Made by a program: the position numbers and the translations under genes. A stretch of 64,000 nt of DNA, from contig JANHCV010000010.1 of assembly GCA_025594325.1 (NCBI GenBank), forward strand, positions 62,001 to 126,000, in the 5' to 3' direction. Every line of letters starts with the position of its first letter. Position 1 is the first letter of the stretch. Of this stretch, positions 1 through 7,174 are shown piece after piece. Origin of the DNA: Blastocladiella emersonii ATCC 22665 (Eukaryota; Fungi; Blastocladiomycota). The notes under the pieces were generated by a model. That model was not told the DNA's origin. It saw nothing but the letters and a program-made list of their open reading frames with translations, and ran no database searches.

Positions 1-997
1 CCGACGAGGTAGGGGACGGGATGCGGTCGAGCGAGTGCTCGGCGGCGTAACGGCTGAAGCGGTGGTTTGCCGCTGCCGAGGAGCCAGCGTCCGAGGTCGA
101 GACCGTCGGCGTCGGCGGCGGCGAGCTGAGCAGCTGGCTGCCGGACTGGGACGGCGGCGCGCCGCTCGGGCGGAGGGGCTGCGGCGTCTTCGGGCGGCTG
201 CTGCCGCGGCTACGGCTACGGCGGCGGATGAAGACGGCAGCGGCCACGACGGCGACGGCAGCGAGCGCGGCGATCCCTAGGTACATGATGAGCGACGACG
301 ACGAGGACCCGGTGCGGTTTCCGGATGAGTTGGCGGTGGACGAGCCCGAGGTGGAGCCCGTGGCCGACGGCGCGACGCTCCCACCAGCGGACGGCGAGGT
401 ACCAGCCGAGCCGGCACCCGCTGAAGAGCCAGAGCCCGAGGCGCCCGAGCCTGTCGCAGCGATACCAGAACCAGCGCTGCCGTTCCCGTTGCCGTTCGTC
501 GAGCTGCCACCGTTGGAGCCCGTACTGCCGCCATTGTTGTTGTTGTTGTTGGTGCTACCTCCGTTGCCGCCAGTGGTGGTGCCGGTGCCCGTGCGAGCGG
601 GCGGCCGCACGCCGTCGGTCCAGGGGAACACGGCCCCGCCGAGGGCCGAGCACTTGCCGGCGGCGGTCCACCCGCGCCAGTCGCCCGACGGTTTGTTGCC
701 GCAGTAGACGGCCGTGGCTTCGGCCTTGGTGACGTTCTTGCCGCCCTCGGTGTAGGTGCCGTCCGGGTTGGCGATGGGCCCGCAGAAGCCAAAGTTGCTG
801 CAGCACTACTCGGTTCGCGGCTGTCAGCGGCCTGTCATGGTACGGTACGCCGCTGGCCCATGTACCTGGTCAAGGAGACAGGTGTTGGCAGCCGACTGCG
901 GCCCGCAGACGGGCCGGTTCTGGGCGTCGCGGAACAGCGTCGTGGCGGGCTCCGGCAGCCCGTACTGGTCGCACTGTTTGTCGGCGAAGGCGGACAT
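1..997 (-). CDS. Hevein-like (CBM18) ectodomain + Gly/Ser/Asn stalk + single TM protein, paralogue A (3' end runs off the window)
   Basis: ATG at 997 (MSAFADKQCDQYGLP...VCGPQSAANTCLLDQ); GT-AG intron 806-865 with CTGAC branch; exon 2 CCSNFGFCG...YCGNKPSGDWRGW...KC, then G/S/N stalk, TM LIMYLGIAALAAVAVVAAAVFI and RRRSRSR. Frame stays open to the window edge. Confidence 0.8.
533..551. repeat. (TTG)n microsatellite encoding a poly-Asn run on the minus strand
   Basis: attgttgttgttgttgttg inside the stalk of paralogue A. Confidence 0.8.
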
Positions 998-1181
998 ATT
1001 GCATGCAGTGGCTACGTGAGCAGATCTCGCAGGGATCACTTTTGCTCGAGCCGACAGGGAGAGAGGAAGCGGTCGAGAAGTCCCGCCACATTGCCGCCGT
1101 GGCTCAGGGACCCCCGCGCCCCGAATCCAGTGTCATCAAACACGGTCTATTTTTGCGGGTATACACGACCGTGGGCGTCTG

Positions 1182-2623
1182 TCAGGGTCTGCGCTGGTCC
1201 AGCGTGAGGGCAGGGAGGTACACCTCGCGGTCTTCGGTGGTCGCCGCGGCTGGACCCTCGCGGGCGGTGGCGGCGGCGGGACCGCGGCCGGGACCCGGCA
1301 TGCCCGGCGACGTCGGCAGCTCGAGCTCGTACTCGGACGTCTCGGGTGCCGGCAGCCCGGGCGCGTGGGCAGCGGGCAAAGGCGTCGAGGCGTGGTACTC
1401 GAAGACAACGTGGACCGGTGCGCGCATGGCGCGGCCGCCGCCCTGGACCGTGACGGGCCGCGGACGAGCAGCTGCAGCGGCCTGTCCGGCGGCAGAGGGA
1501 GGCTCGAACAGCACGGGATCGGCGACCGAGACGGGTATGGAGCTGACGGGGGTGCGGTCGGGAGCGTCCAAGGGCGGCGGGACACCAAAGGGAACCGCAG
1601 GCGGGACGCCGTCGGACCGGCTCGCGCTGCTGTTGGCCGAGGTGTGGCCGCTGAGGTGGTACGGGTCAAACGACGGCACCATGGGACCGGCAATCGACGA
1701 GGGGACGGGCGAGCGCGGCGTGTGCATGTCTGCGGAGGGCGGGTGGTGCACGTCGAGCGGCATGAGCGCGACGGCCGCCGACGCGAGGCCGGCCGAGGAG
1801 CGACGCGAGCGCGAGTTCCGCGGGTCAGCGAGCAGCGCGTCGGGCAGGGCGGATGGGTCCGAGGGCCGGCGCGGGTGGTTGAGCGCGTCGTGCGGCTCGT
1901 TCGAGTAGGGCGGGGCGACTGGCGAGTGCGTCGTGATGGCGTCCGGGTCCGCGGTTGCGAGCGTGGTCGAGGACGCGAGAAGCCGGCTGTCGGGCCGCGA
2001 CGTGGCATGGTCATCGCCCGTGCGCTTTCCGGTAGCGGCCTCCTCGCGACTTGCACCACCACCACCACCGTGGTTCGAGCGTCGACGGCGAGCGCGCATG
2101 GCCACGACCCCGGCGATCGCGCCAATCACGGCCACACCGACCGCGACAAGCCCAACGATGGCGCCGAGCGAGAGGCCGCCCTTCTTGCCGTTGCCGAGGC
2201 GGCCGATGAGCTCGGCGCGCGAGGGCGGGCGGTCGCCGTTGGGCCACGGGTAGACGGCTCCGCCGATCTCGCCGCACTTACCGGCGGGAGTCCAGTTGCG
2301 CCAGTCGCCGGCGGGCTTCGTCTCGCAGTAGGCGGCGATAGCATCGGCCTTGGACACGGCCTTGCCGTTCTCGTTGTAGTTACCGTCGGAACCGGCGAAC
2401 GGGCCGCAGAAGCCGCTGTACGAGCAGCACTACGCGCACGCGCGGGGAGTGTGAGCCGAGTCGGGCACGAGACGGGAATCACGCGTGTGCGAACCTGGTC
2501 GGCGAGACACACGGAGGTCGCGTTCTTGATGCCGCACACAGGCTGGCCGAGCGCGTTGCGGTACGGCTCGTCGGGCGCGGGCAGCCCGTACTGGTCGCAC
2601 TTGCGGTCGGCAAAGGCAGACAT
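1182..2623 (-). CDS. Hevein-like (CBM18) ectodomain + single TM protein, paralogue B (no SH3)
   Basis: ATG 2623 MSAFADRKCDQYGLP...VCGIKNATSVCLADQ; intron 2430-2494; CCSYSGFCG...YCETKPAGDWRNW...KC; TM LSLGAIVGLVAVGVAVIGAIAGVVAM followed by RARRRR; Pro/Ser-rich tail; TGA at 1182. Confidence 0.85.
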
Positions 2624-2978
2624 GGCGTTTTAGCGTGGTGATCGTCAGGTTGCGGCGAGTTAGCGTCGCGCTGGGCTCATGCCTTGATGCATGGAGGCTT
2701 CATGGAGCGACGCGGAGGAGAGCGCGAGCGGAAGATGAGCGCCGATCGCGTGTGACCGGCACGCGAACGCGCGCTCGACGTTCGAACGAGAAGGGAAGGT
2801 TCCACGCGTCACTCAGCCTAAAAACGGGGGCCTGGCTCCCTGTCTCCCGCGCTGCGCCACCACGCTGCAAACCGCCGCGCTCCGCCGCGCTTCACAGGTC
2901 GCCGCCCAAGAACAGATGAGGGGAACAATACAGAATAGTCTATGGTTGAATCAATCACATCGCGATTCCCGCCGCGCC

Positions 2979-5048
2979 TTAGCGCCGCTCGGGCCGCCGC
3001 AGACTCGCGTTGCGCTCCATGGCGCCGATGCCGCCGCCGGGCGTGAGCGGGACGACGAGGTTGGGCTGGTTCTCGGCGATCGCCGCCATGTCCTCCTGCA
3101 GCGCGACCATGATGAGGTCGCCGGGCCCCGCGGGCTCGAGGATGCACAGCGGGAACGCGCCGCGCGACCCCGTGTGGTTGTTGCTGCGCACGTTGGTCCC
3201 GACCGCCCACCCGTCCGCGAACACGGCGCCGACCTCGACCGCGTCGCCGGGCTCGGCCGACAGCTCGTCGGGCCGCTGCGCGTGGAACGCGTGCGCGCAC
3301 GTCCGCACCCCCGCGATGCGGTCCGGGTGCGCGTTCCACGCTGCAAAGAACCGCGGCAGCGCCGCCGCCTCCTGCGACACGGGCGCCGGGATCGCTGCCG
3401 GGAGTGGTGGGCCCGCTGCATCAAACGACATGGGCCGGTCGATCACGGGCAGCGTCAGCGCCGCGGGAAGCTGGCCGAGCTGCGGCATCGCGAGCGCCAG
3501 GGCCGGCTGCGCCTGTGGCTGCTGCTGCTGGTTCATGGCGGCCGCCGGGTACGTCATGGGCCGCGCCGATCCGGGCGTGAGCGGCGGGAGGAAGATCTCC
3601 TGGTCGTCGTCCAGCGTGCCGCCGACGCGCATCACCGTCGACTGCGGGATTGCGGGCGCGGGACCCGCAGCGCCCGACGTCGGCGGCTTGTACTCGAATA
3701 CGACGTGCACGGGCGCGCGCGACGCCTTGCCGACGCCCTGCACCGTCACGGGCCGCGGCTTGGTCACCGTGAACCCGGGGAGTGCGAGCGGCGACAGCGT
3801 CGGCGACGACTGGCCCGCCGCTGCGGCGGATGCAAGGGCGGGGTTCAGTGGCGCGGCGGGCGCAGCGGGGGCAGGCGAACCCGTGGCCGCCGCTCTGCTA
3901 CTACCGCCATAGCTCGTGCCGAGCGCCGTCTCGTTGGCGTGGATCGACGGGAGCGGCGGTAGACCCAGCGGGATCACGGCGTGGTTCTGCTGCTGGTTCT
4001 GCGGCTGCGGCTGCAGCGCCTGCATCACCTTGGCCGGCGGGCCACCCGACAGGACGTGCAGGGCCACGGGCGCGGGGGCGAGCGGCGACGCGTTGCGGAT
4101 CATGGGCGGCTGCTGCACGGGGAGATGCTGCGGCTGCGGCTGAGGGGACGCGCGGTGCGGCTGCAGCGACGCCAGGTCGACCTCGAGGCGCGGCGGTTGC
4201 TGATGTTGCTGGTGGATGAGGTGGTCGTTTTCGCGCGGGTGCTGGTACGGCGAGCTGGCCGCGGACTCGGGGTCGGCGCTCGCCGCGAGCGGCGGCACGC
4301 TGGCTGCGCTGAACCCGGCATCGGCGGGCTTGGGCGCAGAACTAGCAGACCGGGACTGCGAGAGCAGGCGGTTGTCGGTGCGCGACATGGGCCGATCGAG
4401 GCTGTCGTCGTTGCGGGACTTGCGCCGCCGCAGGAACAGGGCGATCGCGGCGACCGCAACGACGGCCGCGGCAGCGATCCCGCCGATCATGCCAATGGAC
4501 GGGCCCGAGCTCGCGACCGGGTTGGCCGACGAGTCTGGCGCAACCGCGCTCGGCGTCGCCGTGCTGGCGGCGGTGGCGGTCGCGGCCACGGTGGTCGTTG
4601 CCCGCGAGAGCGCCGGCGGCTTCACGCCGTTGGGCCACGGGTACACGGCGCCGCCGAGCTCACCGCACGTCCCGTAGGCAGTCCACCCGCGCCAGTCGCC
4701 CTGCGGCTTGGCGTCGCAGTAGACGGCTGTGGCCTCGGACTTGGACATGGTCTTGCCGTTCTCGACGTACGAGCCGTCCGGGTTGGCGATGGGCCCGCAG
4801 AAGCCGCCGGCCGAGCAGCACTAGACATGGTCGTCCGTGCGTAAGCGGCGCGGGAACGGGGCTCGTCGTGGAGAAGATCGTACCTGGTCGAGCTGGCATG
4901 TAGCCGTGACATTGTTGGACCCGCAATGAGGCTGGCCGAGCGAGTTGCGAGAGAGGACGAGAACGGGCTCAGGCAGGCCAAACTGGTTGCACTGCTTCTT
5001 GGCGAAGACGGCCTGCGTCGCCGAGCTGGTCGACGAGGAGGCGGACAT
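2979..5048 (-). CDS. Hevein-like (CBM18) ectodomain + single TM + C-terminal SH3 protein, paralogue C
   Basis: ATG 5048; intron 4821-4883; CCSAGGFCG...YCDAKPQGDWRGW...TC; TM IGMIGGIAAAAVVAVAAIALFL followed by RRRK; SH3 signature AHAFHAQRPDELSAEPGDAVEVGAVFADGWAVG...GAFPLCIL at about 3135-3305. Confidence 0.85.
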
Positions 5049-5537: not shown

Positions 5538-6047
5538 TCACGGCGGCCCAGTCGGCGATGGCGAAGGTGATGGAGGCCGCGGGGGCTCCCAGGCGTGGAG
5601 GACGCTCTCAGTCTCGACCGAGATGGCAATGGTGAGGAGCGACTCGGGCGGCGTAGGTGGTGGCGGGCAGTCGTCGCCTGTAGCGGCAGTGGGGAAGCAG
5701 ATAGCCGAGGGCGTAGTGGGAGCGGGCGTGTAGTGCGGGAGGAACTCGCCGCCGCGGTCGTCGGGATCGTCCTCGTAGCGGCGGCGCGATTCCGACCTGG
5801 ACGGCCCCACGTCGTGCAGAGCGCTCTCCCCGCGCGCTGCGTCCGCGTTGGTCGCCGCAACCGACCTGCGCAACAGACGCAGCGAGCACGAACACACGAT
5901 CGCGAGGATGAGGGCGAGCAGCAGGCAGCCCACGACGAACCAGGTGTAGGTGGCGTCGTCGGAGCCGAGGTGCGGCATGGCCATGGCCATGTTCATGTGT
6001 TGCGCTGTTGGTGATGGTAGCAGTCGTGGTGGGTCGTTTGTGTACAT
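5538..6047 (-). CDS. Small single-pass membrane protein with Pro-rich cytoplasmic tail (LPxY motif); start codon uncertain
   Basis: TM WFVVGCLLLALILAIVCSCSL followed by RLLRR; tail contains EFLPHYTP and PPPPTPP. Confidence 0.5.
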   Translation of the reverse strand: MYTNDPPRLLPSPTAQHMNMAMAMPHLGSDDATYTWFVVGCLLLALILAIVCSCSLRLLRRSVAATNADAARGESALHDVGPSRSESRRRYEDDPDDRGGEFLPHYTPAPTTPSAICFPTAATGDDCPPPPTPPESLLTIAISVETESVLHAWEPPRPPSPSPSPTGPP

Positions 6048-6121: not shown

Positions 6122-7174
6122 TACCGTCACGCACACACGACATGCTCACATCCGCGTCTGTACCCGCGTCGCTCACCATGCTGCTAGCGCGCCTACTTCG
6201 TGGATCAGGGCATCGTGCCCGACTGCCCGCCCGCGCTCCTCGAGCTCATCGCCCGCTAGGCGGACCTGCGCCGGTTCGCGCGCGCCTACAACTCGCAGCT
6301 CGCCATGGCCGCCGTGCTCACGCAGCCGGGCGCCCGCACCAACCCGCACGGCGTCCACAACTCGCGCCTCAGCTTCTCAATGCTGCGCGGCGCAACGTGG
6401 TACGTCGCTCTCCGACCTCGCCTTCTTCAAGAGCGCGCTGCCGCCGCTGAGCTCGCCGCCATAGCTGCTGCCGCCGGTGGCCCTGATGCTACTTAATTGT
6501 CGTCTGCCGCCGCGGGCGATGGCGCGGACGCCGCGCAGGGCGAGAGCTTCCTCGCCAACGGACTCGAGTCGCGCCGCGAAATCGCGGACGTGGCGCGCAG
6601 CGCCGGCACCGGTCTGCCGTCGTACTACTTCCACGACTCGAACGCGCTCACGGAGAACCACATCTTCGGTAACTGCACGGTGCGCCTGGTCAAGGCACTC
6701 GGCGACATCCTCCAGGAGTCGAACCCGCTGGTCCGCGGCTACGTCAAGATCCGCGACATCATCAAGGACACGCGATCCGCGGTCGAGACGCCCATCGTGC
6801 GCATCAACACGTCGCGCTCGGGTCCGATCCTCAACTCGGCCGCCCTCCTCGTGCCGTTTGCCCGCGCCAAGCAGAACCACCTGCCCTACGTGTTCGCGCT
6901 CAAGCTCGACGCTGGCCACCACAACGGCCGCTTTTACGACAAGCGCATGAACGTCCTGTCAGCCGAGTACGAGCCGCTCGCGTTCCCGCTGCTGTTCCCG
7001 TTCGGGCAGCCCGGCTGGTCGCCCGAGCTCAAGAAAAGTACGCCATCTCCCTCGCCCGCCGCATCACGGAGCGCTGTGCAGGCCGCCGCCACTGCCTCCG
7101 CGGCCGCCGCCACGTCCGTCGCCTCAACGCGTCCTCGCCGCGGCCGTTGTCGCGACGTTCCCCTTCCCTTATAG
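6122..7174 (+). mobile_element. Degenerate, 3'-truncated Helitron RepHel N-terminal fragment
   Basis: One frame reads PCC*RAYF..PPALLELIAR*ADLRRFARAYNSQLAMA...LRGATWY and later EYEPLAFPLLFPFGQPGW. These match Helitron motifs CCxxG..PP..L....F...IRxYNxxFAF and YDPLxYPLLFPxGExGW. In-frame stops at 6185, 6257 and 6494; no Rep catalytic or helicase motifs follow. Confidence 0.75.

Follow-up and report, generated by a model that had tools for sequence, protein, structure and literature searches.

We describe a family of single-pass membrane proteins from the zoosporic fungus Blastocladiella emersonii ATCC 22665, three members of which are encoded at the start of a 64-kb stretch of its ~70% GC genome (contig 2, positions 62001-126000; hereafter, “the window”, whose minus-strand coordinates are used unless stated otherwise). 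Each of the three, which we call A, B and C, combines an N-terminal head with eight Cys residues, a single transmembrane (TM) helix and a long tail, which in C ends in an SH3 domain. As judged from sequence, the family spans the phylum Blastocladiomycota and is not peculiar to this locus, and it joins known modules in an undescribed, phylum-restricted arrangement. On balance we favor the view that these are single-pass plasma-membrane glycoproteins that would act as wall sensors or as linkers between the wall and the cell cortex.

Reading of the strand places three two-exon paralogues within positions 1-5048 of the window. Their introns are 60-65 nt long, run from GT to AG, lie in phase 0 and fall directly 5' of the two codons of the CC pair in the head. 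The spliced products of A and B equal the database proteins P0001 and P0002 residue for residue, so the splice sites of these two genes are independently supported. Full-length analyses used P0001 (A) and P0002 (B), and Pfam searches with gene C were run per exon. A first-pass annotation of the same DNA had reported three adjacent minus-strand paralogues with an 8-Cys head, a phase-0 intron just before the CC pair in all three, one TM helix followed by a basic stop-transfer run, and an SH3 domain that ends C and is missing from B. The gene models, the alignments of A, B and C, and the match of A and B to the database proteins bear out the first two points; hydrophobic segments with Arg-rich flanks in all three bear out the third; and profile matches to solved SH3 structures bear out the last, with the addition that A lacks the domain as well.

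A six-frame search of the whole assembly brings the family to eight members in B. emersonii. Five form a tandem array at 55.5-66.8 kb of contig 2, in the coordinate order E, D, A, B, C, while G and F lie at ~608-610 kb of the same contig and H lies on contig 5. The intron position is common to all eight, with D lacking a clean AG acceptor. Among A, B and C, the dN/dS of the head is ~0.5 at a dS of ~0.6, and the true ratio is probably lower, because a GC3 of 0.92 depresses dS. The three genes look maintained rather than decaying.

The heads of A, B, C and the five further paralogues follow the pattern C-x3-GLPxP-...-CG-x7-C-x4-CCSxxG[F]CGP-x22/23-[YF]C-x4/5-GDWRxW-x4-C-...-YPW; in D, which lies outside the window, RCS replaces CCS, i.e., the first Cys of the CC pair is missing. 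In alignments, the exon-1 part keeps an invariant C, GLP, P, P, C and C, and the exon-2 part has 17 columns that are invariant over the eight copies (C, S, G, CGP, G, G, A, C, GDW, W, C, G and P). The spacing of the hevein core, C-x8-C-x4-CC-S-xx-G-x-CG, is exact in A, B, C and four of the five other paralogues, D being the exception. The second half of the hevein motif, x(3,4)-[FYW]-C followed by C-x3-C, was not found in A to H. From the sixth Cys (that of CGP) to the next (that of [YF]C) there are 25-26 residues, and the terminal C-x3-C is replaced by the N-terminal Cys and the Cys after GDWRxW. At the positions that bind ligand in hevein, the Ser (hevein Ser19) is invariant in 8/8 paralogues, an aromatic residue precedes the [YF]C Cys (hevein Tyr30) in 8/8, the Trp23 position is aromatic in five of eight (Phe in A, B and C), and the Trp21 position is aromatic in three of eight (Phe in A, Ser in B and Gly in C).

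Set beside the hevein/CBM18 domains of hevein, WGA, UDA, the pokeweed lectins, and fungal chitinases and deacetylases, the family shares the core Cys spacing, the conserved Ser and the aromatic residue before the Cys at [YF]C. It differs by an insertion of ~20 residues between CG and [YF]C, modeled as a hairpin of two short strands plus a helix; by the exchange of the last disulfide (C-x3-C) for one that would use the N-terminal and post-GDWRxW Cys; by an added C-terminal GGAVYPW segment; by the frequent loss of the first ligand Trp; and by being membrane-anchored instead of secreted.

We conclude that the head is a genuine, divergent hevein/CBM18 derivative and not a chance match to CCSxxGxCG. 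In an hmmsearch of the PDB, the family profile matched pokeweed lectin-C (2.9e-6), lectin-D2 (1.5e-5), hevein (0.007) and WGA (0.01). Aligned by hhalign to a profile of 13 canonical CBM18 domains from its own genome, the family gave a probability of 92% and an E of 6.2e-7 over a 24-column core. AlphaFold2 with a 29-row alignment modeled residues 1-120 of B at a pLDDT of 87-96; an earlier run with 14 rows had been confident at residues 40-80 only, and Foldseek with that model was uninformative. The top 12 PDB matches of the head model in Foldseek were all hevein-type lectins, but at E values of 0.09-0.6. With VIA-align, residues 26-89 of the model superposed on 44 of the 45 residues of the Hevea CBM18 structure 4mpi_B at an rmsd of 1.9 A and a Z of 3.7. 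These results are consistent with a hevein fold, but the scores are low for a domain of this size. In the wide search with VIA-align, the long TM helix drew most of the matches, and the outcome was uninformative on the head. Pfam is less generous: against the Chitin_bind_1 (PF00187) gathering cut-off of 27.8 bits, A scores 24.6 and B 19.4, both under it, and C, searched exon by exon, reaches at most 12.6. The same long-insert variant in relatives clears that cut-off, with 30.9 bits in P0012 and 28.8 in P0017. The assignment to hevein/CBM18 in the first-pass annotation thus stands as regards the Cys core and the profile homology, and needs amending in that the Pfam cut-off is missed and the second half of the motif differs. 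Elsewhere in this genome, at least 24 canonical CBM18 domains exceed the Pfam cut-off (contigs 4, 5, 7, 11, 15 and 20), often in tandem. These canonical domains share a 10-Cys form that is specific to the lineage: one additional Cys lies at the N-terminal end, in “RC[IV]LP”, and another at the C-terminal end, in “GLPxC”.

Each protein has one strongly hydrophobic 21-mer, with a mean Kyte-Doolittle value of 2.5-2.7. The net charge is +3 to +7 in the 15 residues that follow it and -1 to +3 on its N-terminal side. Neither a signal peptide nor any other N-terminal hydrophobic segment was found in the eight paralogues or in the orthologues. An in-frame stop precedes the start Met of every one of the eight, and 6-20 aa separate that Met from the first Cys. 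N-x-S/T sequons (NVT, NAT) occur in the heads of C and B. Between head and TM helix runs a stalk that varies in length and composition: 110 aa in A (39% Ser+Thr, of S/T/G/N type), 46 aa in C (33%) and 28 aa in B (7%). Since no signal peptide is present, a point that the first-pass annotation had not stressed, the topology is one that we infer, and a signal-anchor (type III) orientation with the N-terminus outside and the C-terminus inside is indicated because an SH3 domain, cytosolic by nature, sits at the far end, because the charge bias points the same way and because of the sequons.

In the opposite case the orientation would be flipped, or the head would never be exported; it would then be a Cys-rich domain in the cytosol, e.g., a metal-binding knuckle, and the family could not serve as receptors at the cell surface. 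This reading would account for the missing signal peptide in the eight copies and the orthologues and for an N-domain that is long for a type III protein. However, the positive-inside rule is strongly met for N-out, SH3 domains are cytosolic, hevein homology implies disulfides and the head repeatedly carries sequons for N-glycosylation. A partial precedent for export is the yeast type I protein Fus1p, which is not known to have a cleavable signal peptide. We consider a cytosolic head very unlikely.

The tails are 300-480 aa long, disordered and proline-rich, and those of A, B and C have two motifs in common, RPRPVxVQGxGxxxRxPVHVVFEY and [DE][ILV][FY]LP. The C-terminal region of C is, on sequence evidence, an SH3 domain, although it stays under the Pfam cut-offs (22.6 versus 30 bits for SH3_9, PF14604; 19.2 versus 22.9 for SH3_1, PF00018). 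Paralogue F clears SH3_1 at 23.8 bits, and orthologues clear SH3 cut-offs at 25.9 and 36.0 bits. The SH3 regions of C, E and F align well, conserved flanks included, and a profile built from the three matches 154 solved SH3 chains, the best being p47phox (3.3e-7) and vinexin (7.7e-7). The HMMER comparison with Pfam that the first-pass annotation had proposed as a check therefore gave a divided answer, in that C falls below the cut-offs for SH3, and A, B and the exons of C below that for Chitin_bind_1, with relatives that pass the one or the other.

A Pfam scan found no SH3 domain in A, B, G or H, and D, judged from its translated tail without a Pfam scan, has no SH3-like sequence past the shared motif. 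A and B look like C-terminally shortened derivatives of an SH3-bearing form that lost its last ~200 aa, because both end shortly after the pair of tail motifs also seen in C. Of the two forms, the one with SH3 is probably ancestral, a view that is based on the occurrence of the domain in four genera and not on a tree. The idea that B is a decoy or co-receptor, put forward when the genes were first read, was speculation and finds no support; A and B look like SH3-deleted derivatives that keep the two tail motifs. Near the tail end, a short acidic-x-[YF]-L-P-P/L motif recurs across genera (EIFLPP, EVYLPA and ELYLPL in the tails of A, B, C and D; in the Allomyces orthologues, RLYLPP, DLYLPP and VLYLPS), and this acidic-x-[YF]-L-P motif may be a docking or endocytosis signal.

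An exhaustive profile search over 1.84 billion representatives returned 34 matches. Orthologues with the full architecture are found in Allomyces arbusculus, A. javanicus, A. macrogynus, Catenaria anguillulae and Paraphysoderma sedebokerense. They have no signal peptide, an 8-Cys head, a TM helix, a long tail and, in nearly all, a C-terminal SH3 domain; AMAG_11207 of A. macrogynus is without it. The databases name them “hypothetical” or “SH3 domain-containing protein”. Word-index protein searches (with C exon 2 and with the P0002 head) had given matches from B. emersonii only, which is an effect of the index and not an absence of relatives, because the exhaustive search found the orthologues. 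In a tree of the 62-aa exon-2 head region, support is confined to the blastoclad clade (96/95) and does not extend to the order in which the genes duplicated. The architecture search suggested in the first-pass annotation thus located the same layout in Allomyces, Catenaria and Paraphysoderma, a phylum-wide spread that the annotation itself had missed. Its remark that it did not recognize the architecture as a described system agrees with the searchable literature, where full-text searches found no description of the head-TM-SH3 arrangement or of the Allomyces loci. Multi-stretch matches to bacterial proteins (P0007, P0019, P0022, P0023, P0025 and P0027, with CBM20, CHB_HEX_C and CHRD) were rejected as sums of short partial matches.

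Outside the family, the same head variant sits at the C-terminus of AA9 lytic polysaccharide monooxygenases (LPMOs) among metagenome proteins from JGI (P0012, P0014, P0017 and P0018), on one fasciclin protein, and six times in one protein (P0011) of the amoebozoan Nematostelium gracile. The AA9 and Nematostelium modules share with the family the 8-Cys variant, the insertion and the GD[WY]R motif. They differ in being secreted or anchored in a GPI-like manner, in their place at an enzyme C-terminus, in keeping both ligand aromatics (CCSKYGYCG, CCSQWGYCG), in a shorter spacing to the last Cys and in having no TM helix with an SH3 tail. A role of the module in targeting polysaccharide is supported by its presence on AA9 LPMOs and its repetition in Nematostelium. 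In the AA9 proteins, linkers of TTGK repeats occur together with the long-insert hevein module at the C-terminus and a tail that is hydrophobic and GPI-like, and the pairing of a CBM18-type module with AA9 is unusual. Nematostelium gracile is the only named non-fungal carrier of the long-insert module.

Put together, these features suggest the following working model. The TM helix with its poly-Arg C-terminal flank would act as a reverse signal anchor, and for that reason the head (~105 aa, 8 Cys) would face outward and the tail would be cytoplasmic. The head, a hevein/CBM18 domain apparently enlarged by the insertion and by N- and C-terminal extensions with an extra Cys pair, would be carried by a stalk of 28-110 aa that is of low complexity and, in A and C, rich in Ser and Thr, and would bind chitin of the wall or some related beta-1,4 glycan. 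Through its SH3 domain and other parts, the tail would recruit partners that have proline motifs and belong to the actin and polarity machinery of the cell cortex. Such a protein would be a functional analogue of the Wsc/Mid2 sensors and an architectural analogue of Fus1p, and sensing of chitin or the cell wall by the family is plausible on these grounds.

Several observations weigh against this model. The window proteins fail the CBM18 cut-off, and their match spans only positions 2-24 of the 38 in the profile. In place of the first ligand aromatic (Trp21), C has Gly and B has Ser, and the Trp23 position is Ala or Gln in three other paralogues. On their own, a Foldseek E of at least 0.09 and a VIA Z of at most 3.7 are insignificant, and the sequence motif may steer the structural model. 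Export of a disulfide-rich N-terminal domain of 115-235 aa without a signal peptide is unusual. Finally, the ligand may not be chitin, because the partner LPMOs belong to AA9, which is typically cellulose-active.

Wsc1-3 and Mid2, the wall sensors of Dikarya, have a Cys-rich, carbohydrate-facing head (8 Cys in the WSC domain), a Ser/Thr-rich stalk, a single TM helix and a cytosolic signaling tail. The general head-stalk-TM-tail layout is common to them and to our family, but they are not the proteins found here. The window proteins gave no Pfam match to the WSC domain (PF01822) at E up to 10, and the family differs further in lacking a signal peptide, in ending in an SH3 domain instead of a Rom2-binding motif and in belonging to a different phylum.

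The parallel with Fus1p concerns the other end of the molecule. Fus1p is, according to PMC2063912, a type I TM protein whose cytosolic tail is 416 aa long and has an SH3 domain close to the C-terminus, and its partners are Cdc42-GTP, Bni1, Pea2 and Ste5. The family, with C as the member that has the full layout, resembles Fus1p in its predicted N-terminal outside part, one TM helix, long disordered cytosolic tail and near-C-terminal SH3 domain. As its ectodomain, on the other hand, Fus1p has a short stretch of O-glycosylated Ser/Thr residues and no Cys-rich lectin domain. The family might nonetheless consist of Fus1-like polarity or fusion scaffolds that organize Cdc42, formin and the polarisome at growth, rhizoid or gamete-fusion sites, with the head as a glycosylated sorting or anchoring knob. 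Besides the fit to the architecture given in PMC2063912, the ESM Atlas puts C nearest to fungal single-pass/SH3 clusters, including KLLA0C01540p of Kluyveromyces lactis (score 0.85), which we take as a lead only since Atlas scores <0.9 are weak. Gamete fusion does occur in Allomyces, but B. emersonii has eight copies and we know of no sexual cycle in this species. The likeness is moreover one of architecture; the constrained lectin-type head (8 invariant Cys, Ser, GDW) exceeds the needs of a sorting knob; and there are members without SH3. We rate a Fus1-like scaffold as unlikely, and prefer a wall sensor or wall-to-cortex linker.

Alternatively, the wall-less zoospore or germling could use the proteins at its surface, as adhesins or as receptors for a substrate: the head would recognize external substrata or hosts, chitinous or of another glycan, and the tail would trigger encystment or attachment. 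Catenaria is a parasite of nematodes and Paraphysoderma one of algae, and other blastoclads are saprotrophs. The confinement of the family to zoosporic Blastocladiomycota, the direct exposure of the head on a wall-less cell, and a tandem expansion with a variable stalk (28-110 aa), typical of surface recognition families, would all suit adhesins. The ligand aromatics, however, are partly degenerate, and sensing of the cell's own wall fits the same evidence equally well. We hold the adhesin explanation to be rather improbable.

The coordinates of the genes and their domains in the window are collected in Table 1.

Table 1. Positions of genes A, B and C and of their features in the window
Gene	Feature	Position	Strand	Remarks
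C	Gene	2979..5048	-	668 aa as modeled; exons searched separately
C	Exon 1	5048-4884	-	55 aa
C	Intron	4883-4821	-	63 nt, GT..AG
C	Exon 2	4820-2979	-	613 aa + stop
C	Head, 8-Cys extended hevein domain	4635..5048	-	Exon 1 and first 62 codons of exon 2; NVT sequon
C	TM helix core	4434..4496	-	IGMIGGIAAAAVVAVAAIALF, then LRRRKSR
C	Conserved tail motif	3690..3761	-	KPRPVTVQGVGKASRAPVHVVFEY; common to A, B and D
C	C-terminal SH3 domain	3141..3305 (approx.)	-	Divergent; DGW and FP kept
B	Gene	1182..2623	-	458 aa; identical to P0002; NCBI name “Cadherin-8”; without SH3
B	Exon 1	2623-2495	-	43 aa
B	Intron	2494-2430	-	65 nt
B	Exon 2	2429-1182	-	415 aa + stop
B	TM helix core	2097..2159	-	Followed by RARRRR
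B	Conserved tail motif	1395..1466	-	RPRPVTVQGGGRAMRAPVHVVFEY
B	EVYLP motif	1226-1212	-	
A	Gene	1..997	-	Full product 568 aa; identical to P0001; without SH3
A	Exon 1	997-866	-	44 aa
A	Intron	865-806	-	60 nt
A	Exon 2	805 to beyond window start	-	
A	TM helix core	227..289	-	Followed by RRRSRSR

The label “Cadherin-8” that NCBI gives to B (P0002) is spurious: a Pfam scan of the protein found no cadherin family at E up to 10. In paralogue D (contig 2, 57440-57960, minus strand), a TGA lies in frame directly upstream of the start of exon 2, with no canonical in-phase AG acceptor, and D may be a pseudogene or may use an unusual splice, perhaps GC-AG, that would remove CCS. The tail of D goes no further than the last residue of the conserved ...PVHVMFEYK motif. 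Next to gene C, on its upstream side, are two open reading frames, at 5541-6047 on the minus strand (169 aa) and at 6497-7171 on the plus strand (225 aa), and a Pfam scan of both found nothing at E up to 0.01. The 169-aa frame has a hydrophobic segment followed by RLLRR.

For annotation, the family defines an extended 8-Cys hevein variant of ~100 residues that it shares with amoebozoan-type LPMO proteins and that present-day CBM18 models only half recognize, which matters for CAZy-style annotation, and one misleading cadherin label is corrected. For the organism, one can go further and picture a receptor with which the zoospore, wall-less as it is, or the young germling responds to chitin or to wall contact: its head would pick up the earliest chitin, whether newly formed or met outside, and the SH3 tail would nucleate the actin and polarity machinery of the cortex, coupling contact to encystment and rhizoid emergence, with the SH3-less paralogues modulating the response through their proline-rich tails. 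We regard this picture as a long shot; if true, it would amount to a lectin-SH3 receptor class without a described counterpart in other fungi. Wall formation at encystment in B. emersonii is fast and synchronous, and the species is for that reason well suited to testing the wall-sensor idea. The family is thus a concrete, testable candidate for sensing of the chitin wall or of the substrate in early-diverging zoosporic fungi.

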